Below, piece by piece: positions 9,300 through 47,700 of a stretch of DNA of 64,000 nucleotides. Position numbers and translations under genes: made by a program. Numbering within the stretch: the stretch's first letter is position 1; the number at the start of each line of letters is the position of its first letter. The notes below the pieces were generated by a model. The model did no database searches, was not told where the DNA came from, and saw only the letters and a program-made list of their open reading frames with translations. The stretch is from Macrostomum hystrix (Eukaryota; Animalia; Platyhelminthes): the NCBI GenBank assembly GCA_950097015.1, contig CATNEN010000018.1, positions 62,001 to 126,000 on the forward strand. The letters are read 5' to 3'.

Positions 9300-12200
9300 C
9301 CCTACCAGGCAGTCTCTATACCAATGTGTGTACACTAGCTCATCTGCATTCTATCTCTACCAAGCAGACTCTATACCAATGTGTGTACACTAGCTCATCT
9401 GCATTCTATCTCTACCAAGCAGTCTCTATACCAATGTGTGTACACTAGCTCATCTGCATTCTATCTCTACCAAGCAGTCTCTATACCAATGTGTGTACAC
9501 TAGCTCATCTGCATTCTATCCCTACCAAGCAGACTCTATACCAATGTGTGTACACTAGCTCATCTGCATTCTATCTCTACCAAGCAGACTCTATACCAAT
9601 GTGTGTACACTAACTCATCTGCATTCTATCTCTACCAAGCAGTCTCTATACCAATGTGTGTACACTAGCTCATCTGCATTCTATCCCTACCAAGCAGTCT
9701 CTATACCAATGTGTGTACACTAGCTCATCTGCATTCTATCTCTACCAAGCAGTCTCTATACCAATGTGTGTACACTAGCTCATCTGCATTCTATCTCTAC
9801 CAAGCAGTCTCTATACCAATGTGTGTACACTAGCTCATCTGCATTCTATCTCTACCAAGCAGTCTCTATACCAATGTGTGTACACTAGCTCATCTGCATT
9901 CTATCCCTACCAAGCAGACTCTATACCAATGTGTGTACACTAGCTCATCTGCATTCTATCCCTACCAAGCAGTCTCTATACCAATGTGTGTACACTAGCT
10001 CATCTGCATTCTATCCCTACCAAGCAGTCTCTATACCAATGTATGTACACTAGCTCATCTGCATTCTATCCCTACCAAGCAGTCTCTATACCAATGTGTG
10101 TACACTAGCTCATCTGCATTCTATCTCTACCAAGCAGTCTCTATACCAATGTGTGTACACTAGCTCATCTGCATTCTATCTCTACCAAGCAGACTCTATA
10201 CCAATGTGTGTACACTAGCTCATCTGCATTCTATCTCTACCAAGCAGTCTCTATACCAATGTGTGTACACTAGCTCATCTGCATTCTATCTCTACCAAGC
10301 AGACTCTATACCAATGTGTGTACACTAGCTCATCTGCATTCTATCTCTACCAAGCAGTCTCTATACCAATGTGTGTACACTAGCTCATCTGCATTCTATC
10401 TCTACCAAGCAGTCTCTATACCAATGTGTGTACACTAGCTCATCTGCATTCTATCCCTACCAAGCAGTCTCTATACCAATGTGTGTACACTAGCTCATCT
10501 GCATTCTATCTCTACCAAGCAGTCTCTATACCAATGTGTGTACACTAGCTCACCTGCATTCTATCTCTACCAAGCAGACTCTATACCAATGTGTGTACAC
10601 TAACTCATCTGCATTCTATCTCTACCAAGCAGTCTCTATACCAATGTGTGTACACTAGCTCATCTGCATTCTATCTCTACCAAGCAGTCTCTATACAAAT
10701 GTGTGTACACTAGCTCATCTGCATTCTATCCCTACCAAGCAGTCTCTATACCAATGTGTGTACACTAGCTCATCTGCATTCTATCTCTACCAAGCAGACT
10801 CTATACCAATGTATGTACACTAGCTCATCTGCATTCTATCCCTACCAAGCAGTCTCTATACCAATGTATGTACACTAGCTCATCTGCATTCTATCCCTAC
10901 CAAGCAGTCTCTATACCAATGTGTGTACACTAGCTCATCTGCATTCTATCCCTACCAAGCAGTCTCTATACCAATGTGTGTACACTAGCTCATCTGCATT
11001 CTATCCCTACCAAGCAGTCTCTATACCAATGTGTGTACACTAGCTCATCTGCATTCTATCCCTACCAAGCAGTCTCTATACTAATGTGTGTACACTAGCT
11101 CATCTGCATTCTATCTCTACCAAGCAGACTCTATACTAATGTGTGTACACTAGCTCATCTGCATTCTATCCTTACCAACCAGTCTCTATACCAATGTGTG
11201 TACACTAGCTCATCTGCATTCTATCTCTACTAAGCAGTCTCTATACCAATGTGTGTACACTAGATCATCTGCATTCTATCCCTACCAACCAGTCTCTATA
11301 CCAATGTGTGTACACTAGCTCATCTGCATTCTATCCTTACCAACCAGTCTCTATACCAATGTGTGTACACTAGCTCATCTGCATTCTATCCCTACCAAGC
11401 AGTCTCTATACCAATGTGTGTACACTAGCTCATCTGCATTCTATCTCTACCAAGCAGTCTCTATACCAATGTGTGTACACTAGCTCATCTGCATTCTATC
11501 TCTACCAAGCAGTCTCTATACCAATGTGTGTACACTAGCTCATCTGCATTCTATCCCTACCAAGCAGTCTCTATACCAATGTGTGTACACTAGCTCATCT
11601 GCATTCTATCTCTACCAAGCAGTCTCTATACCAATGTGTGTACACTAGCTCATCTGCATTCTATCCCTACCAAGCAGTCTCTATACCAATGTGTGTACAC
11701 TAGCTCATCTGCATTCTATCCCTACCAAGCAGTCTCTATACCAATGTGTGTACACTAGCTCATCTGCATTCTATCCCTACCAAGCAGTCTCTATACCAAT
11801 GTGTGTACACTAGCTCATCTGCATTCTATCTCTACCAAGCAGTCTCTATACCAATGTGTGTACACTAGCTCATCTGCATTCTATCCCTACCAAGCAGTCT
11901 CTATACCAATGTGTGTACACTAGCTCATCTGCATTCTATCCCTACCAAGCAGTCTCTATACCAATGTGTGTACACTAGCTCATCTGCATTCTATCCCTAC
12001 CAAGCAGTCTCTATACCAATGTGTGTACACTAGCTCATCTGCATTCTATCTCTACCAAGCAGTCTCTATACCAATGTGTGTACACTAGCTCATCTGCATT
12101 CTATCCCTACCAAGCAGTCTCTATACCAATGTGTGTACACTAGCTCATCTGCATTCTATCCCTACCAAGCAGTCTCTATACCAATGTGTGTACACTAGCT

Positions 12201-23291: not shown

Positions 23292-24967
23292 ATGTTTCCC
23301 TTACTCAGAATACTCACGGCTGTCCTCGTGTACCTCATGAACTCACTTCATTCCTCACACCACCGAGAAGACGCACAAGAACTCACCGACCAGGACCTCC
23401 TCGCAGCCATCAGAGACGACCGAGTGGAACCCGTTCAGCGATTCATTAACAGCGGCGGGAGCCTCGATACCTTCATCGCCTATGCAGACTCATTCTTTAC
23501 TCCAGCAATGCTCGCTTGTGAATTCGGAAGACATGAAATTCTCGTGAGACTCATTCGAGCCATTGCAGATGTAGATAAGCAGAACTGGAGAGGAACGACG
23601 GCATTGTATATTGCATCAATGGATGGTCACCACCGACTGGTAAAATCACTCATCAAAGCACGAGCCGACGTCAATCTTCAAACAATTACTGGCGCCTCAA
23701 CTCTCTACATTGCATCACTAAATGGCTATAAGGACGTCGTCCACTCACTCATCAAAGCACGAGCCGACGTCAATCTTCAAACAATTACTGGCGCCTCACC
23801 TCTCCACATTGCATCACTAAATGGCCATAACGACGTCGTCCACTCACTCATCAAAGCACGAGCCGACGTCAATCTTCAAACAATTACTGGCGCCTCACCT
23901 CTCCACATTGCATCACTAAATGGCCATAACGACGTCGTCCACTCACTCATCAAAGCACGAGCCGACGTCAATCTTCAAACAATTACTGGCGCCTCACCTC
24001 TCTACATTGCATCAGAAAATGGCCATAACGACGTCGTCCACTCACTCATCAAAGCACGAGCCGACGTCAATCTTCAAACAATTACTGGCGCCTCACCTCT
24101 CCACATTGCATCACTAAATGGCTATAAGGACGTCGTCCACTCACTCATCAAAGCACGAGCCGACGTCAATCTTCAAACAATTACTGGCGCCTCACCTCTC
24201 TACATTGCATCACAAAATTGCCATAACGACGTCGTCCACTCACTCATCAAAGCACGAGCCGACGTCAATCTTCTTACAATTACTGGCGCCTCACCTCTCC
24301 ACATTGCATCACTAAATGGCCATAACGACGTCGTCCACTCACTCATCAAAGCACGAGCCGACGTCAATCTTCAAGAAAATACTGGCGCCTTACCTCTCTA
24401 CATTGCATCACAAAATGGCCATAACGACGTCGTCGACTCACTCATCAAAGCACGAGCCGACGTCAATCTTCAAACAAATACTGGCGACTCACCTCTCCAC
24501 ATTGCATCACTAAATGGCCATAACGACGTCGTCCACTCACTCATCAAAGCACGAGCCGACGTCAATCTTCAAACAATTACTGGCGAGTCACCTCTCCACA
24601 TTGCATCACTAAATGGCCATAACGACGTCGTCCACTCACTCATCAAAGCACGAGCCGACGTCAATCTTCAAACAATTACTGGCGCCTCACCTCTCTACAT
24701 TGCATCACAATATGGCCATAAGGACGTCGTCCACTCACTCATCAAAGCACGAGCCGACGTCAATCTTCAAACCATTACTGGCGCCTCACCTCTCTACATT
24801 GCATCCTGCAATGGCCACCTCAGTGTTGTCGAGTCACTCATGAAGGTCGTTCATAGCCCCGACTTGCTGGAAGCTGCTCTGCGAATCGCCACGGAAATCG
24901 GCCATGACCAAGTGGTTGACCTGCTGAGCCGTGGATCCTCCGCGCCATTGCCTGAGAAGCAAAACAG
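23292..24967 (+). CDS. Exon 1 of copy 1: ankyrin repeat array (11 near-identical 33-aa repeats + terminal repeat + divergent caps)
   Basis: Repeats such as [33 protein letters not shown] fit the ANK consensus (G.TPLH.A...GH..VV..LL..GADVN); 99-bp period. Confidence 0.93.
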
Positions 24968-25504
24968 GTAGGAGCTCCTGTTTCTTGTAAAATTCACCTT
25001 AGCAATCATAGATACTTCGGATTCTTTAAGTATTCAGACTCCAAATCTGATAGCTGAACTTCGGAACTGATTGTTATTGTGTTATTGTGTTATTGTTTTC
25101 TTGTTTTATTGTTATTGTTAAGGTTCTCACGAATACCTGCTGCTTTTACTTCGCATTGTTAAGAGCTGGCGAATTTATAGCGAAAAGCCTCGAATTCCCA
25201 ACAATGACCACTAGGAGTAAAATAACGGAAAACTACGACAATAGGAAATAGTTATTAAATATGTCTGCTTGCGCCGAAGATTATACCACAAGGATAGGAA
25301 ATTGTTAGTGGCGCTGGTGTGCCGCCGGCCCTAGTTAGCAGTGGCGCCCTCAGAAGGCGAAAGACAGAACTTCCTAGTAGTTCTTATTGTCAATGCCTGT
25401 TTAGCCACAGACAGCAGACTCCACTTCAAAATTCTCAGTTTATGAATGTCGGATTTGATTGTGGAGGATTCAATATTACAGGCTTGGGATTCAGTATTAC
25501 AGGC

Positions 25505-26021
25505 CTCCTAGCCTCACTAAACCTCAGCACTGCCGCCTCCTCTCACCCTTCAGAGCCTCCCAGCCTCACTAAACCTCAGCACTGCCGCCTCCTCTCACCC
25601 TTCAGAGCCTCCCAGCCTCACTAAACCTCAGCACTGCCGCCTCCTCTCACCCTTCAGAGCCTCCCAGCCTCACTGAACCTCAGCACTGCCGCCTCCTCTC
25701 ACCCTTCAGAGCCTCCTAGCCTCACTAAACCTCAGCACTGCCGCCTCCTCTCACCCTTCAGAGCCTCTCAGCCTCAATGAACCTCAGCACTGCCGCCTCC
25801 TCTCACCCTTCAGAGCCTCCCAGCCTCACTGAAACTCAGCACTGCCGCTTCCTCTCACCCTTCAGAGCCTCCCAGCCTCACTGAAACTCAGCACTGCCGC
25901 CTCCTCTCACCCTTCAGAGCCTCCCAGCCTCACTGAAACTCAGCACTGCCGCCTCCTCTCACCCTTCAGAGCCTCCCAGCCTCACTGAACCTCAGCACTG
26001 CCGCCTCCTCTCACCCTTCAG
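25505..26021 (+). repeat. 52-bp tandem repeat (~10 copies), each unit containing a copy of the exon-2 splice acceptor
   Basis: Unit CCTCAGCACTGCCGCCTCCTCTCACCCTTCAG|AGCCTCCCAGCCTCACT(G/A)AA; only the last acceptor continues into the NTase ORF (AGCCGCACCC). Confidence 0.92.
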
Positions 26022-26371
26022 AGCCGCACCCAGCGACGCAGAGCTGAGCCAGCAGCTGCACTCCAAGCTCTCTCAGTCGGGATTCGTGGACTCCAGAGCC
26101 GCCTTGCAGATCGCTGTGGCTGACGTCTTGCAGGATGTCCTCAGGAAGAGATTGAACTATGACGACTGTTTCGCTGTGGGCAGCTTCTCTGAGGCCTGGG
26201 GCAACAGCCTGGTCTCTCTGGATGGCAGAACTGACATCGACTCTGACATCGATGTTATTGAGCTGATTCCAGGAAGGCCGATTCACCCGAGAGATGTGTG
26301 CGAGTGCGACCGAGTGGAGGCTGCTCAGACAGTGGAGCTCAGCAATGGCCACATCCTGAGCTCCGGATTCG
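26022..26371 (+). CDS. Exon 2 of copy 1: cGAS/Mab-21-like NTase N-lobe with GS and DxD motifs
   Basis: [37 protein letters not shown]...[12 protein letters not shown]...DSDIDV. Confidence 0.85.
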
Positions 26372-27523
26372 GTGAGAATTTCCTGTCAGAGACTGTCGGG
26401 ATGGCTGGGACAAGAATTGAACATGAGTTTGGCTTGCTCATCTTCTTTGGCTTTCTAAAGCAAACAACAAACAAGGAAAGCAAACAAATGTTCAGTCCAG
26501 GTTTGAAATGCAGAGCCAGAGCAAGAAATTTCCCAGCAAAAATGTAAACCCTGATTTTTTTTTCGGCGCGCTTCCTCTGGGAACCAAACAGAGGCTTAGC
26601 GCTCCTCGCTCAGTGTACTTAGTGAATAGTGATGCTATATTATGTATTCATTGTACATCCTGATTTTTATAAGCCAAAATCTAATATCCTATATTCGCTA
26701 TAAACTGTTAGTTAACTAGCAATGTAAGCCCATTTTCGGTGAGCCCAGACGATTCAATCAAGTTTCTCTTTGTTTCTTAGGCTCGCAATGACTTTCACAG
26801 TCACAGGTGTGTAACAGTACAGTTTTTGAGGTGACCGCCCCAGTCCATGGACTGAACCGTTGTACACAGCTTTTGGAAGCGTCGTACAAACGCTACGGCT
26901 GGGCCATTGCAAATTTCGGTTATTTCTATTATATTATATTCTGTTGCCGCTTTTACAGAATTCGTTTTCTGTGATTCTGAAATTATGCCAATCAATGTCC
27001 ATTGATTGTCAACAATATTCCGAACAGCCTATTCTTACTAGCCATATAGTAGCTAGTTATCCAGTAGACAGGAAAATTATCCTAATTTATGTGGGCGGGA
27101 AAACCCCCGCCGCAGGAAAATCCCATCGAATTTCCAGTCCAGATTTGAATCTCGGCCTGAGGGAACGATGCTTGTCCAAGAGCTGGAATCATAACCTCGT
27201 ATTTATTCAGCTCAGCCAGCTGAAGGTTACAGTAGAAATTTGAGGGGGCTGGTGACTCCCCAGTACAAAGACTGAAGAGCTGTATACAGTACTCACAAAA
27301 TACTCATAAGAAACTAAAGAAGCAAGGAAGAATTGAAAATAATCGTGCACGTGCTCCCCTCCGTAGGGGGCAAAAGTTTCTAGTCTGCACTAAATTTTCA
27401 TATAAATCGCAGCTACAAACCATCTTTGCACAATTTTTTTATATTATCGAGAAATAGTTCTGTGTCTATTAACTTGAAATCTGATGGCATTTTGCATATT
27501 TCTTGCATTTCCGTTTTCTCCAG

Positions 27524-28970
27524 CTTCCAACCCAGCCTACACTGAAAATGGCTCAGCCCTAGACCGTCTGTGGACCGAGTCACCGCCCGCCGCCTCTGCC
27601 GCTACCCTCCCATCGCGCCGCTGCAGCCACCAAGAGTCTCCAACTCCAACATCCCCCAGTCCGTGCTGCAGTCGCTCCAGCGAGACATCACCTCTGCCTC
27701 ATGGCCCTGTCACGTGGTGCACGCAGCTCCTCCCGGAATGGGGGGCCAGCAGCTCCGAGTGAGCAGCAGCTTCCTGGAGAGGCGACTGCTGCGAAGTCTC
27801 AGCACTCTGCAAGGCCAGCTGTTCGTCATACTCAAGTGGCTGCTGAAGAAGAAAATCTCAAACGTCGGCTTCAAGTCCTATCACGCAAAGACCGTCACGT
27901 TCCGAATGCTGGAGGAGACACCTGCTGAGCAGTGGAAGCCGGAGAATCTCGTGAGTCTCACGACACGCTCGCTGCAGATTTTGCTTGACGGTGTGGAGAG
28001 CGGCTGCAGATCAGACACACCTGACGGTCGGATCCTGGAGCACTTCTTCCTGAGCGATGCCGCTGTGTACCTGAAAGGCTTGAAGTCGCCCACATCAGCT
28101 GAGAGAGTGAGCGAAGCGTTGAATCGGGCAGCCGGCGCATTGAGAGACGCCATGGCTGAGCTGCCTCAGCTGCTGCTGCAGTTCGAGGACAGTCTGCGAC
28201 CCGTCACCGACTCGGGCCGATTCCACTTCCACCCGTTCCTCATCCTGCCAGTTCTTCGGCTCACACCTGTACCAGAAGCCAAGACATGCGAGTTCCACGA
28301 GATCTACGACATCGTGAGAGAGTCGGTGCTTCGTCTGTCCGATGGAGACCGCAGCCCGCAGTCCCGAGAGAGTCTCGCAGAGCTGATCAACAAACTGCCA
28401 GACTGCGCCCGATCAGCGCGAGAGTCTCTCAGAGCGCTGGCCTGCCTGAAGTTCGGCGACAGACGCACTGCTAAAAAAGTTGTGAGCGACTGTGGGCCGT
28501 TCAGTGCGAGCATAGGCATCGATTGGTCAGCTGAGAGGTCGGCGAGTGAGGCCACTGCGGACTTTGTGTGGCAGCACCTGAGGAGCCGAGACTCCGCCTG
28601 GAAATTCTGCTTGGAGTTTGACGAGCGACCAAAGCTGCCGATTCAGCACGAAGTCTTTGCCGACTGCTTTCCCTGGCAGATGATGAACTACAGAACATAC
28701 TTCTACCTGAACTTTGACGCTCTGCTGCGGGCTCTTTGCAATGAGCTGACAGTAGCAGGAGACCGGAGCGATCAGGACTGGATCCGGGATGTGGCTCAGA
28801 GGGAGGATGCGGATGAGCAGGAGCTGCTGGTGGCTGCGGCGATCAGCGGAGATCTGGAGCTGCTGCGGCGGCTCCGCAGAAGAATCACTCACGAGCTGTG
28901 CCGGCTGCCAGGGTGGCTGCAGCAGAAGATTCAGAGGCTGAGCTGTCAAACTAAAACTTCAGGCCAGTGA
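27524..28970 (+). CDS. Exon 3 of copy 1 (frameshifted near its 5' end): Mab-21 C-lobe + helical extension
   Basis: [33 protein letters not shown]...[28 protein letters not shown] matches the Mab-21 motif (RLSFS..E..L...LK.L.K....SYHLKT..F...E..P...W...NL). Confidence 0.85.
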
Positions 28971-41863: not shown

Positions 41864-41995
41864 CTCAACAGCCAATAAGCCTCCAGTAAACAAGGCTTCT
41901 GGCTGGCTGCAACGGAATGCAAAGGCAAAGTGTCTGGCTACTAAACTTTCTACCACATTTGCCACTTTCCTAACCCACAAGCAGACACCTGCAAA

Positions 41996-44900
41996 ATGTT
42001 TCCCTTACTCACAATACTCACGGCTGTCCTCGTGTACCTCATGAACTCACTTCATTCCTCACACCACCGAGAAGACGCACAAGAACTCACCGACCAGGAC
42101 CTCCTCGCAGCCATCAGAGACGACCGAGTGGAGCCCGTTCAGCGATTCATTAACAGCGGCGGGAGCCTCGATACCTTCATCGCCTATGCAGACTCATTTT
42201 TTACTCCAGCAATGCTCGCTTGCCGATTCGGAAGACATGAAATTCTCGTGAGACTCATCCGAGCCATTGCAGATGTAGATAAGCAGAACTGGAGAGGGAC
42301 GACAGCATTGTGGATGGCATCACAATATGGTCACCACCGACTGGTGAAATCACTCATCAAAGCACGAGCCGACGTCAATCTTCAAAGAAATACTGGCTCC
42401 TCACCTCTCTACATTGCATCACAAAATGGCCATAAGGACGTCGTCCACTCACTCATCAAAGCACGAGCCGACGTCAATCTTCAAGAGAAAGTCTATGGCC
42501 GCTCACCTCTCTACATTGCAACACAATATGGCCACAAGGACGTCGTCGACTCACTCATCAAAGCACGAGCCGACGTCAATCTTCAAGAGAAAGTCTATGG
42601 CCGCTCACCTATCTACATTGCATCACAATATGGCCATAAGGAGGTCGTCCACTCACTCATCAAAGCACGAGCCGACGTCAATCTTCAAACAAATACTGGC
42701 GAGTCACCTCTCTACATTGCATCACAGCAAGGCCATAAGGACGTCGTCAACTCACTCATCAAAGCACGAGCCGACGTCAATCTTCAAAGAAATACTGGCT
42801 TCTCACCTCTCAACATTGCATCACAATATGGCCATAAGGACGTCATCGACTCACTCATCAAAGCACGAGCCGACGTCAATCTTCAAATAAATACTGGCGC
42901 CTCACCTCTCTACATTGCATCACAAAATGGCCATAAGGACGTCGTCCACTCACTCATCAAAGCACGAGCCGACGTCAATCTTCAAGAGAAAGTCTATGGC
43001 TCCTCACCTCTCCACATTGCATCACAAAATGGCCATAAGGACGTCGTCCACTCACTCATCAAAGCACGAGCCGACGTCAATCTTCAAGAGAAAGTCTATG
43101 GCTCCTCACCTCTCTACATTGCATCACAAAATGGCCATAAGGACGTCGTCCACTCACTCATCAAAGCACGAGCCGACGTCAATATTCAAGAGAAAGTCTA
43201 TGGCTCCTCACCTCTCTACATTGCATCACAAAATGGCCATAAGGACGTCGTCCACTCACTCATCAAAGCACGAGCCGACGTCAATATTCAAACAAATACT
43301 GGCTACTCACCTCTCTACATTGCATCACAAAATGGCCACCTCAGTGTTGTTGAGTCACTCATGAAGGTCGTTGATAGCCCAGAATTGCTGGAAGCTGCTC
43401 TGCGAATCGCCACGGAAGTTGGCCATGACCCAGTGGTTGACCTGCTGAGCCCTGGATCATCCGCGCCTCTGCCTGAGAAGCAGAACAGGTAGGAGCTCCT
43501 GTTTCTCCTGTAAAAGTCACATGAGCAATGAGATAATTTGAGACTTCGGATTCTCTGAGTAATCAGACTCGAAATCTGATAGCTGAAGTTCGGAACTGAT
43601 TGTGTGTCAGTTATTGTACATATAAAATATGATTTTGGAGAATTCACAGGTTTGGGATTTAATAATACAGGTTTGGGATTCAATATTACAGGTTTGGGAT
43701 TTAATGTTACAGGTTTGAGATTAAATGTTACAGGTTTGAGATTTAATATTACAGGTTTGAGGTTTAATATTACAGGTTTGAGATTTAATATTACAGGTTT
43801 GAGGTTTAATATTACAGGTTTGAGATTTAATATTACAGGTTTGAGATTTAATATTACAGGTTTGAGATTTAATATTACAGGTTTGAGATTTAATATTACA
43901 GGTTTGGGATTTAATATAACAGGTTTGGAATTCAATATTACAGGTTTGAGATTCAATACTACAGGTTTGAGATTTATATTACAGGTTTGAGATTTAATAT
44001 TACAGGTTTGAGATTTAATATTCTAGGTTTGAGATTTAATATTTCAGGATTGAGATTTAATATTACAGGTTTGGGATTTAATATTACAGGTTTGAGATTT
44101 AATGTTACAGGTTTGAGATTTAATGTTACAGGTTTCGAATTCAATATTACAGGTTTGAGATTCAGTATTACAGAAATAAAATATTGGATTTAGATTTCTT
44201 GAAATTGGCACATTCTGTCTGTTTAGTGTATTATTCGCAAAAAATCTGCCTACTAATTTTTTCAAAAGTGATACATCTTTCACATTCCTCGTTTCAACTA
44301 TAGTTTTAGTTTCAATCCCAGTGAAACTCAGCACTGCCGCCTCCTCTCACCCTTCAGAGCCTCCCAGCCTCACTGAACCTCAGCACTGCCGCCTCCTCTC
44401 ACCCTTCAGAGCCTCCCAGCCTCACTAAACCTCAGCACTGCCGCCTCCTCTCACCCTTCAGAGCCTCCCAGCCTCACTGAAACTCAGCACTGCCGCCTCC
44501 TCTCACCCTTCAGAGCCTCCCAGCCTCACTGAACCTCAGCACTGCCGCCTCCTCTCACCCTTCAGAGCCGCACCCAGCGACGCAGAGCTGAGCCAGCAGC
44601 TGCACTCCAAGCTCTCTCAGTCGGGATTCGTGGACTCCAGAGCCGCCTTGCAGATCGCTGTGGCTGACGTCTTGCAGGATGTTCTCACGAAGAGATGGAA
44701 CAATGACGACTGGTTCGCTGTGGGCAGCTTCTCTGAGGCCTGGGGCAACAGCCTGGTCTCTCTGGATGGCAGAACTGACATTGACTCTGACATCGATGTT
44801 ATTCGGCTGATTCCAGGAAGGCCGATTCACCCGAGAGATTTGTGCGAGTGCGACCGAGTGGAGGCTGCTCAGACAGTGGAGCTCAGCAATGGCCACATCC

Positions 44901-47700
44901 TGAGCTCCGGATTCGGTGAGAATTTCCTGTCAGAGACTGTCGGGATGGCTGGGACAAGAATTGAACATGAGTTTGGCTTGCTCATCTTCTTTGGCTTTCT
45001 AAAGCAAACAACAAACAAGGAAAGCAAACAAATGTTCAGTCCAGGTTTGAAATGCAGAGCCAGAGCAAGAAATTTCCCAGCAAAAATGTAAACCCTGATT
45101 TTTCTTTCGGCGAGCTTCCTCTGGGAACCAAACAGAGGCTTAGCGCTCCTCGCTCAGTGTACTTAGTGAATAGTGATGCTATATTATGTATTCATTGTAC
45201 ATACTGATTTTTATAAGCCAAAATCTAATATCCTATATTCGCTATAAACTGTTAGTTAACTAGCAATGTAAGCCCATCTTCGGGGAGCCCAGACGATTCA
45301 ATCAAGTTTCTCTTTGTTTCTTAGGCTCGCAATACTTCCACAGTCACAGGTGTGTAAAATTACAGTTTTTGAGGTGACCGCCCCAGTCCATGGACTGAAC
45401 CGTTGTACACAGCTTTTGGAAGCGTCGTACAAACGCTACGGCTGGGCCATTGCAAATTTCGGTTATTTCTATTATATTATATTCTATTGCCGCTTTTACA
45501 GAATTCGTTTTCTGTGATTCTGAAATTATGCCAATCAATGTCCATTGATTTTCAACAATATTCCGATCAGCCGATTCTAACTAGCCATATAGTAGCTAGT
45601 TATCCAGTAGACAGGAAAATTATCCTAATTTATGTGGGCGGGAAAACCACCGCCGCAGGAAAATCCCATCGAATTTCCAGTCCAGATTTGAATCTCGGCC
45701 TGAGGGAACGATGCTTGTCCAAGAGCTAGAATCATAACCTCGTATTTATTCAGCTCAGCCAGCTGAAGGTTACAGTAGAAATTTGAGGGGGCTGGTGACT
45801 CCCCAGTACAAGGACTGAAGAGCTGTATACAGTACTCACAAAATACTCATAAGAAACTGAAGAAGCAAGGAAGAATTGAAAATAATCGTGCACGTGCTCC
45901 CCTCCGTAGGGGGCAAAAGTTTCTAGTCTGCACTAAAATTTCATATAAATCGCAGCTACAAACCGTCTTTGCACAATTTTTTTATATTATCGAGAAATAG
46001 TTCTGTGTCTATTAACTTGAAATCTGATGGCATTTTGCATATTTCTTGCATTTCCTATTTCTCCAGCTTCCAACCCAGCCGACACTCAACGAGGCTCCGC
46101 CCTGAGACCGTCTGTGGACGAAGTCACCGCCCGCCGCCTCTGCCGCTACCCTCCCATCGCGCCGCTGCAGCCACCAAGAGTCTCCAACTCCAACATCCCC
46201 CAGTCCGTGCTGCAGTCGCTCAAGCGAGACCTCACCGCTGACTCATCGCCCTGTCACGTGGTGCACGCAGCCCCTCCCGGAATGGGGGGCCAGCAGCTCC
46301 GAGTGAGCAGCAGCTTCCTGGAGAGGCGACTGCTGCGGAGTCTCAGCACTCTGCAAGGCCAGCTGTTCGTCACACTCAAGTGGCTGCTGAAGAAGAAAAT
46401 CTCAAACGTCGGCTTCAAGTCCTATCACGCAAAGACCGTCACGTTCCGAATGCTGGAGGAGACACCTGCTGAGCAGTGGAAGCCGGAGAATCTCGTGAGA
46501 CTCACGACACGCTCGCTGCAGATTTTGCTTGACGGTGTGGAGAGCGGCTGCAGATCAGACACACCTGACGGTCGGATCCTGGAGCACTTCTTCCTGAGCG
46601 ATGCCGCTGTGTACCTGAAGGGCTTGAAGTCGCCCACATCAGCTGAGAGAGTGAGCGAAGCGTTGAATCGGGCAGCCGGCGCATTGAGTGACGCCATGGC
46701 TGAGCTGCCTCAGCTGCTGCTGCAGTTCGAGGACAGTCTGCGACCCGTCACCGACTCGGGCCGATTCCACTTCCACCCGTTCCTCATCCTGCCAGTTCTT
46801 TGGCTCACACCTGTACCAGAAGCCAAGACATGCGAGTTCCACGAGATCTACGACATCGTGAGAGAGTCGGTGCTTCGTCTGTCCGATGGAGACCGCAGCC
46901 CGCAGTCCCGAGAGAGTCTCGCAGAGCTGATCAACAAACTGCCAGACTGCGCCCGATCAGCGCGAGAGTCTCTCAGAGCGCTGGCCTGCCTGAAGTTCGG
47001 CGACAGACGCACTGCTGAAAAAGTTGTGAGCGACTGCGGGCCGTTCAGTGCGAGCAGAGGCATCGATTGGGGAGATGAGAGGTCGGCGAGAGAGGCCACT
47101 GCGGACTTTGTGTGGCAGCACCTGAGGAGCCGAGACTCCGCCTGGAAATTCTGCTTGGAGTTTGATGAGCGACCGAAGCTGCCGATTCAGCACAAAGTCT
47201 TTGCCGACTGCTTTCCGCTGCAGATGATAAACTACAGCACATACTTCTACCTGAACTTTGACGCTCTGCTGCGGGCTCTTTGCAATGAGCTGACAGTAGC
47301 AGGAGACCGGAGCGATCAGGACTGGATCCGGGATGTGGCTCAGAGGGAGGATGCGGATGAGCAGGAGCTGCTGGTGGCTGCGGCGATCTGCGGAGATCTG
47401 GAGCTGCTGCGGCGGCTGCGCAGAAGAATCACTCACGAGCTGTGCCAGCTGCCAGGGTGGCTGCAGCAGAAGATTGAGAGGCTGAGCAGTCAAGGTGAAG
47501 ATCGCCAAGACCAAGGTGAAGATCGCCAAGACCAAGGTGAAGATCGCCAAGACCAAGGTGAAGATCGCCAAGACCAAGGTGAACATCGCCAAGACCAAGG
47601 TGAAGATCGCCAAAACCAAGAGATTCAAGAGAGATTGATATTGAGATTGAGATCAGCACAGGCAAAAAGGCTGCAGAGAAAGCGAAAATCGGTCGAGTAA
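41996..47700 (+). CDS. Ankyrin-repeat / cGAS-like receptor (Mab-21 NTase) fusion, copy 2, intact: join(41996..43488, 44566..44915, 46067..47700), 1158 aa
   Basis: Exons 1493+350+1634 = 3477 nt, one open frame. Donors AG|GTAGGA and G|GTGAGA; acceptors CCCTTCAG|A and TTCTCCAG|C; phases 2/2 and 1/1 match. Domains: 9 internal ANK repeats + terminal repeat; GSFSEAWGN; DSDID; [14 protein letters not shown] (probable third acidic residue, D.V....C..P strand); SYHAKT Mab-21 motif. Confidence 0.85.
43645..44172. repeat. 21-bp intronic repeat (TTACAGGTTTGAGATTTAATA)n
   Basis: Directly visible; only 1-2 relic units at the matching place in copy 1 (~25470-25503). Confidence 0.94.
44322..44565 (+). repeat. 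52-bp splice-acceptor-containing tandem repeat (5 acceptor copies)
   Basis: Same unit as 25505-26021. Confidence 0.92.
47491..47616 (+). repeat. 21-bp coding repeat, (QGEDRQD)x6, in the C-terminal tail of copy 2
   Basis: CAAGGTGAAGATCGCCAAGAC at 47491, 47512, 47533, 47554, 47575, 47596. Confidence 0.93.

Follow-up and report, generated by a model that had tools for sequence, protein, structure and literature searches.

What does a long ankyrin array, made of units that are almost copies of one another, do in front of an enzyme of the cGAS type? The question is raised by a 64-kb stretch of Macrostomum hystrix DNA (the whole of the sequence analysed, here called the window), in which two tandem paralogous genes, copy 1 and copy 2, lie on the plus strand in satellite-rich surroundings. 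In both copies, exon 1 opens with a hydrophobic N-terminal helix, followed by two or three diverged ankyrin repeats and then by the array of near-identical units, and it closes with a C-cap. We find that the scaffold of these units is homogenised down to its silent sites, that replacement differences are concentrated at a few codons, and that the same six codons vary in the arrays of a second gene lineage, from Macrostomum lignano. We consider it probable that the hypervariable array is the ligand-recognition module of a cGAS-like receptor (cGLR), with a homogenised frame and six diversified codons.

Two arrays of near-identical ankyrin units

The ankyrin exons and their arrays are as follows.

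41996-43488, plus strand: copy 2 exon 1, an open frame of 498 codons with strong Pfam Ank_2 and Ank matches, ending in phase 2 at a GT donor
42350-43338, plus strand: copy 2 array of high internal conservation, 10 units, from Tandem Repeats Finder (TRF), motif count and translation
42350, 42449, 42551, 42653, 42752, 42851, 42950, 43052, 43154 and 43256, plus strand: starts of the copy 2 units
Units 2, 3, 7, 8 and 9 of copy 2, plus strand: the 34-residue EKVYG units
23292-24967, plus strand: copy 1 exon 1, with the architecture of copy 2, an open frame of 559 codons with Pfam ankyrin matches
23646-24817, plus strand: copy 1 array, 12 units of 33 residues, mostly of the TITGA...SLN type, from TRF, motif count and translation

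A 39-nt scaffold motif, allowed up to two mismatches, occurs 22 times (12 in copy 1 and 10 in copy 2) against an expectation of 0 from shuffled sequence. Over exactly the two array intervals, TRF reports a period of 99 nt with 11.8 copies and a 95% match in copy 1, and a period of 102 nt with 9.8 copies and a 92% match in copy 2. Translation gives 12 units bearing the ten-residue scaffold signature in copy 1, all of 33 residues, and 10 units in copy 2, of which five are of the 34-residue EKVYG type that copy 1 lacks. An earlier reading of the sequence (the original prediction) had already picked out these five units; its counts of 11 and 9 repeats become 12 and 10, the terminal unit of each array merging gradually into the C-cap. 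It had also described a scaffold nearly invariant over about 20 repeats, silent sites included. This holds for 22 units, and the low silent variation is a property of the entire unit and not of the 39-nt motif alone; in the first ten codons (30 nt) every base is the same in 22 of 22 units.

We took as ankyrin repeats 33-residue units with a G-x-S/T-P-L-H/Y motif, two antiparallel helices and a hairpin loop. The arrays conform to this in their Pfam matches (Ank_2, E = 7e-177; Ank, E = 2e-93), in their alignment to designed ankyrin repeat proteins (DARPins) and ankyrin-R, and in their helix pattern. The mean amino-acid identity between units is 0.88 in copy 1, 0.83 in copy 2 and 0.88-0.92 in the M. 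lignano arrays; in P0004, a relative without conserved units, it is 0.55. By the threshold for high internal conservation of Dyrka et al. (2014), 85% or more identity between units across 100 residues or more, copy 1 and the M. lignano arrays qualify and copy 2 falls slightly below. A search with the exon 1 protein returned generic ankyrin proteins, the closest family member being an M. lignano protein at 54% identity, and no near-identical copy.

Contigs of independent runs, both DNA and RNA-like, match exactly across unit junctions, which shows that the array did not arise in assembly. The contigs of these public runs are shorter than an array; the unit counts compared here are those of the paralogous arrays of both lineages, namely 9, 10, 10, 12 and 15.

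The positions at which units differ

Ankyrin positions were numbered by aligning copy 2 to DARPin D12, with helix boundaries taken from a single-sequence AlphaFold2 (AF2) model of the ankyrin exon that was used for this purpose only (predicted local distance difference test, pLDDT, 64). The strongly variable columns in the window are 1, 2, 3 and 5 in the hairpin, 9, 13 and 14 in the inner helix 1, and 17 and 21 in the outer helix. Placing the variation at the hairpin and helix 1, as the original prediction did, holds for seven columns (1, 2, 3, 5, 9, 13 and 14) and does not extend to positions 17 and 21. Differences at the latter two are mainly between copy 1 and copy 2, and they look like array-specific scaffold states that are still spreading. 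Copy 1 also carries radical singletons at structural residues (G15C, P7T, S6L and Q33L); the singletons of copy 2 are conservative.

The variable positions had been likened to those randomised in DARPins, for which we used the list said to be that of Binz and co-workers from 2003. The likeness extends to five of the seven listed positions (2, 3, 5, 13 and 14); 26 and 33 are fixed in the flatworm, and 1, 9, 17 and 21 are additional. The overlap is five of six codons for M. lignano (P = 5e-4) and five of nine for the window (P = 0.009). The three modules of DARPin D12 in our alignment differ from one another at 2, 3, 5, 13, 14 and 33, which lends support to the list. Both systems have a fixed consensus frame and confine diversity to the hairpin and helix 1. 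DARPins, however, are man-made, with position 33 randomised and position 26 restricted, both of which are invariant in the flatworm arrays, whereas the flatworm arrays vary at position 1 (in the window also at 9, 17 and 21) and have a one-residue hairpin insertion that produces the 34-residue units. On this comparison of sequences the analogy is apt for positions 2, 3, 5, 13 and 14 only.

The same six codons vary in Macrostomum lignano

The closest annotated relatives of the window genes are the M. lignano proteins P0121 and P0122, which led to two loci (L001 and L002) holding three genes with the same three-exon layout. In the open frames of exon 1 the arrays run to 9, 10 and 15 units, whose scaffold (that of the RLLKARADVN lineage) is recognised by a 12-residue signature. 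Among the 31 complete units, variation is confined to six codons, at ankyrin positions 1, 2, 3, 5, 13 and 14, and to the one-codon hairpin insertion also seen in the window; one singleton replacement and one silent change are all that is found outside them. The same six codons are variable in all five arrays of the two gene lineages.

The public models for these genes (P0121, L001:10001-14625; P0122, L002:10001-29445) have 3 ankyrin units as against 9-10 in the genomic exon 1 frames, and the P0122 model covers two genes in tandem, one beginning at 10001 and the other at 23935. The arrays are under-represented in catalogues that rely on these models.

Variants from other copies and individuals were sampled from contigs of four runs from three organisms, placed on the copy 2 array, with our own assignment to positions. 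They fall mostly on the same hypervariable codons: in the hairpin, Thr to Ile at position 1, Asn to Ile at 2, Tyr to Asn or His at 3, and Ser to Tyr and Glu to Leu at 5; in helix 1, Gln-Asn to Tyr-Gln at 13-14. There are also six silent third-position changes, His to Tyr at 16 and His to Asp at 21, and deletions of 3 nt convert a 34-residue unit into one of 33. At 42433, 43138 and 43240, contigs follow the array as far as ...GGCCAT and then continue in another scaffold (HEVARSLIQA in translation), and hence these genomes hold further ankyrin subfamilies, each with its own scaffold.

Diversifying selection at the six codons

The 20 complete units of the window show 30 distinct replacement states over 76 replacement sites and 3 silent states over 26 silent sites (binomial P = 0.018; pN/pS, the ratio of replacement to silent polymorphism per site, is 2.9). 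Silent polymorphism (pS) calculated by the Nei-Gojobori method (NG86) is inflated in hypervariable codons by multi-step paths, and whole-unit counts were replaced by site-class tests with cross-validation, in which the hypervariable codons for each lineage were defined from the other lineage. When M. lignano is the test set, 12 of 18 first and second positions of the hypervariable codons are polymorphic compared with 1 of 24 third positions of the other codons (Fisher P = 1.8e-5); when the window is the test set, the figures are 10 of 12 and 4 of 27 (P = 7.9e-5). The hypervariable sets of the two lineages overlap at six of six codons (P = 7.6e-5). Many of these codons differ between units by two or three bases, with adjoining scaffold that has not changed at all.

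The signal is specific to sites and is not one of whole-unit counts. Relaxed constraint alone cannot push replacement variability above silent variability; selection thus keeps the units different at the six codons. Diversifying selection at what would be the binding-face codons is therefore well supported by the cross-validated tests, which bear out the expectation that the variable sites would be non-random, with a replacement excess at hairpin and helix-1 codons.

Homogenisation and probable shuffling of units

In M. lignano, the 27 scaffold codons differ by 0-0.45% within and between the three arrays, compared with 20-47% for the six hypervariable codons and 3-5% for the gene flanks. The corresponding values for the window are 2.9% within arrays and 3.7% between them for the scaffold, and 11-41% for the six codons. 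Some whole units recur unchanged in different M. lignano paralogues. These patterns make concerted evolution within and between family members well supported on the sequence evidence.

The route by which the arrays grow and change is less as originally proposed. Concerted evolution accompanied by unequal crossover had been put forward, and the homogenisation of the scaffold within and between paralogues is consistent with the first part; adjacent units, however, are no more alike than distant ones in five of five arrays. Since neighbouring units show no extra likeness in any array, local duplication is not the main process, and tandem duplication finds no support as the chief route of array growth. 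Hairpin types (RNTGS/E, LNTG, EVDGC and EKVSGS) and helix-1 types (QN and AY), encoded about 24 nt apart, occur in free combination. Shuffling of units by recombination or by short conversion tracts appears to fit better.

The RNTGS hairpin and the 34-residue EKVxG unit type are common to both lineages, which have diverged to a synonymous distance (dS) of 0.40-0.54 in exons 2-3 and to 37% amino-acid identity in the N-terminal part of exon 1. Unit types that are common to lineages with dS of 0.4-0.5 must be old, while the scaffold of each lineage has been homogenised. Twenty scaffold codons, with ~16.5 silent sites, are nevertheless identical in DNA between the lineages where pS elsewhere is ~0.33 (P = 0.0016). 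This silent identity points either to continuing exchange between arrays within one genome or to a constraint on the DNA or RNA. Every scaffold change specific to a lineage (the window compared with L001:10454-11250 and L002) falls within the first half of the outer helix.

Two other sources of diversity were considered and set aside. Adenine mutagenesis of the kind produced by diversity-generating retroelements was rejected on inspection, the hypervariable changes involving all four bases. Somatic diversification found no support: contigs of RNA-like runs match the germline units exactly.

The array is spliced to a cGAS-like enzyme

The remaining features of the two genes are these.

44566-44915, plus strand: copy 2 exon 2, N-lobe of a cGAS-like nucleotidyltransferase with G-S and D-x-D, from RNA-only coverage, splice joint and frame
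46067-47700, plus strand: copy 2 exon 3, with the third candidate catalytic Asp (PSVDEV) and the Mab-21 C-terminal helical domain, from RNA-like contigs
26022-26371, plus strand: copy 1 exon 2, from alignment to copy 2 exon 2 (2.6% divergence)
27524-28970, plus strand: copy 1 exon 3, from alignment of both copies, with a 1-bp deletion near 27560
41996-42058, plus strand: copy 2 N-terminal hydrophobic segment, ~residues 1-21, hydrophobic by eye, with an AF2 helix at 2-21 of low confidence

Coverage of copy 2 by RNA-like runs is confined to 41975-43488, 44563-44915 and 46093 onward. One RNA-like contig links 43485/8 to 44563/6 with GT..AG ends, joining exon 1 to exon 2; the exon 3 acceptor, after TCTCCAG at 46066, is in frame, and the reading frame is continuous across exons 2 and 3 (from 46067). 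In both copies the exon 2 acceptor in use stands at the end of a 52-bp tandem array directly upstream of it (copy 1, 25503-26025, 10 units; copy 2, 44322-44569, 4.8 units). Near its 3' end, copy 2 exon 3 has ~6 tandem copies of a 21-nt repeat that encodes, in frame, GEDRQDQ (47491-47620); at the corresponding end of copy 1, the frame enters a 22-nt satellite at 28955. A repeat scan of the whole window added nothing to the TRF results.

The enzyme part is a distant relative of cGAS with a Mab-21/cGAS nucleotidyltransferase fold. A family profile of 15 sequences matches cGAS (E = 1.3e-5) and cGLR1 (E = 0.005). An AF2 model of a 68%-identical M. lignano homologue (P0121:262-871; pLDDT 78) was compared by Foldseek with the PDB, and its best 50 matches are all cGAS (E ~1e-5, template modelling score ~0.5 by target length). 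With the window proteins alone, Pfam Mab-21_C stays under its cut-off, and a search with the enzyme part returned almost only M. lignano proteins, at 68% identity or less. The earlier assignment of the array to a cGAS-like gene is supported by the RNA contig that joins the ankyrin exon to the cGAS-fold exon and by the profile and fold matches. On sequence the locus is not that of a NOD-like receptor (NLR): neither a NACHT nor an NB-ARC domain turned up when every exon was scanned with Pfam, and the partner of the array is a cGAS-fold enzyme.

A plausible catalytic set in copy 2 consists of VGSFSE, DIDV and PSVDEV. In the homologue model, G-S lies at the end of strand 58-62, D-x-D in 85-90 and the third Asp in 142-150. 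A sequence search of the enzyme N-lobe against solved structures yielded no useful alignment, so the set is put no higher than plausible. A patch of four codons in the opening part of exon 3, only a few codons ahead of the third candidate Asp, is wholly different between the copies (copy 2, 46081-46092, DTQR; copy 1, 27538-27549, YTEN), and transcript contigs of other copies show further 12-nt versions of the patch between matching flanks.

The hydrophobic segment at the N-terminus of copy 2 could be a membrane anchor or a signal sequence. The M. lignano counterpart (L001:10001-10090) begins with MG and contains a CC pair. Together the N-termini of the window and M. lignano proteins hint at membrane tethering of the receptor.

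Mosaic history of the two copies

Copy 1 and copy 2 share 97.2-98.2% identity over the stretch that begins at the 3' end of intron 1 and runs to exon 3. Outside the array, exon 1 (23292-23645 and 24735-24967 of copy 1; 41996-42349 and 43256-43488 of copy 2) has a pS of 0.09-0.16 and a ratio of replacement to silent rates (dN/dS) of ~0.4, and its replacements cluster at helix-1 positions of the first repeats. This silent divergence is 3-6 times that of the remainder, which comprises the last part of intron 1, exons 2 and 3 and intron 2 (~0.02-0.03). Such uneven silent divergence indicates that the copies have a mosaic history, the breakpoint of which falls somewhere within intron 1.

What the array may be for

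From these results we infer a ligand-recognition role for the array within a cGAS-like receptor, along the following lines. Exon 1 would produce an ankyrin solenoid of near-identical 33/34-residue units, among which recombination, within and between paralogous arrays, would homogenise the scaffold to its silent sites while altering the number and order of units. The positions at which selection would maintain differences between units are 1, 2, 3 and 5, in the hairpin finger, and 13 and 14, where the inner helix ends. These six codons would jointly line the concave binding groove, and each copy would present its own surface, because its units differ at groove codons on one and the same rigid frame. 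Spliced to the cGAS/Mab-21-fold nucleotidyltransferase, the array would probably sense a protein or another ligand that is not a nucleic acid, and the tandem cluster would evolve by birth and death in the manner of immune receptors. A cGLR fed by a repertoire of recognition specificities would be a reasonable, if indirect, reading of the sequences. A bolder version, which we hold only tentatively and rate below even chance, is that the sensing part of the cluster is an antibody-like ankyrin surface reshuffled in the germline, a protein-recognising cGLR arm comparable to the sensor repeats of NLRs, in which ongoing exchange keeps the silent sites of the scaffold identical and the units interchangeable.

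Several observations weigh against the recognition role or narrow it. In the M. lignano arrays alone, whole-unit counts are 17 replacement to 4 silent, which is not significant (P = 0.32), and the case for selection is made by site-class tests rather than by a formal recombination-aware codon model. Positions 17 and 21 vary on the outer helix, off the groove, and the model from which the helix boundaries come is of low confidence. The variation in unit number is among paralogues, not alleles. Between copy 1 and copy 2, dN/dS in exons 2-3 is ~1.0, and copy 1 as assembled has a frameshift just upstream of the third candidate Asp, due to the 1-bp deletion near 27560, which leaves open reading frames 27484-27762 and 27570-28970 in different frames and precedes most of the enzyme domain; the product of the assembled gene would be truncated or would consist of ankyrin repeats only. 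With these two facts together, part of the cluster may be decaying, and one of the two supposed members of a repertoire may be dead. A mosaic with one decaying member fits birth-and-death evolution plus exchange between copies. Finally, ligand binding, enzyme activity and an immune role are what we infer from sequence.

The same evolutionary regime could serve a different purpose if the array binds a fast-evolving partner within the worm, in reproduction, self/non-self recognition or the assembly of the enzyme, rather than sensing pathogens. None of the data names the ligand, the family is found almost only among M. lignano proteins, and the fungal analogues discussed below include allorecognition genes, all of which would suit such a partner. 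We nonetheless think it unlikely: the enzyme family to which the array is fused serves innate immune signalling in other animals, and a tandem cluster with dead copies resembles clusters of immune receptors, although neither point is decisive. A neutral origin, in which units were recently amplified and tolerant surface positions have drifted while structural ones were constrained, with no diversifying selection, is less probable again and we regard it as improbable. It draws on the facts that the variable positions are the least conserved in ankyrin repeats generally, which is why they were chosen for DARPins, and that whole-unit ratios of replacement to silent changes are only weakly above neutral. 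Such drift cannot give replacement sites in the six codons a polymorphism many times that of silent sites in the scaffold, as found in both cross-validated tests. It is also hard to reconcile with codon differences of two or three bases beside unchanged scaffold, with unit types common to lineages at dS 0.4-0.5, or with a scaffold ten-fold less diverged than the gene flanks.

There is very little chance that the arrays are collapsed or mis-ordered repeats, or pseudogenes. The frameshift in copy 1 exon 3, the four radical singletons of copy 1 and the satellite-rich region are what one might expect of dead or misassembled DNA, but the reading frame stays open for 498-702 codons in the five arrays, contigs of independent runs (DNA and RNA-like) agree exactly with the assembly at unit junctions, and exon 1 is spliced into mRNA. 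The recognition role in a cGAS-like receptor is the reading that we retain as probable.

Relation to known repeat receptors

The closest parallel is offered by fungal NLRs with ankyrin, WD40 or TPR repeats whose internal conservation is high (Dyrka et al. 2014, PMC4986451; Paoletti et al. 2007, cited there). Isolates differ in the length of their ankyrin arrays, from 7 to more than 16 units, and positive selection acts on five codons in the inner helices and hairpin; only 0.8% of metazoan repeat proteins have repeats of high internal conservation (PMC4986451). The fungal and flatworm systems have in common near-identical units, concerted evolution within and between paralogues, a variable number of units and a few hypervariable codons on the inner helix and hairpin or loop of the concave face, and the fungal repeats are read as fast-diversifying recognition domains. 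They differ in that the fungal array is C-terminal to a NACHT or NB-ARC NTPase, whereas the flatworm array is N-terminal to a cGAS/Mab-21 nucleotidyltransferase in an animal host, and in that the fungal repeat-number polymorphism is allelic, from the polymerase chain reaction, whereas the flatworm differences in unit number are among paralogues. By analogy, the flatworm locus appears to work like the fungal NLR repeats but is not a member of that group.

Fusions of ankyrin repeats to cGLR nucleotidyltransferases, the same domain architecture as here, are known to exist, and most flatworms are said to have no cGLRs, according to Li et al. 2023 (bioRxiv 10.1101/2023.02.22.529553). Five M. lignano members of the family are in that paper's table of predicted cGLRs for biochemical screening; its M. 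lignano construct sequences start at the enzyme domain, and in the portions consulted nothing is said of units that are nearly identical, of hypervariable codons or of a varying number of units. Our literature search found no publication on these near-identical ankyrin-cGLR units or their hypervariable codons; the pattern is one known from fungal immune receptors and not reported for animal cGAS-like receptors. The variable lymphocyte receptors of lampreys are likewise repeat solenoids whose diversity is focused on the concave face, but they are built of leucine-rich repeats by somatic cassette assembly, whereas flatworm RNA contigs match the germline units.

To our knowledge, no activating ligand has been identified for most animal cGLRs, and those that have been identified are nucleic acids. 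Macrostomum is a laboratory model, so tests of binding, of enzyme activity and by knock-down are feasible. The natural units provide a ready map of the ankyrin positions that tolerate and use diversity. If the ankyrin surface is indeed under diversifying selection, it would point to direct recognition by these receptors of varied, probably protein, ligands, and the strategy of fungal NLRs, near-identical repeats with a few hypervariable codons, would extend to animals and to another signalling enzyme.

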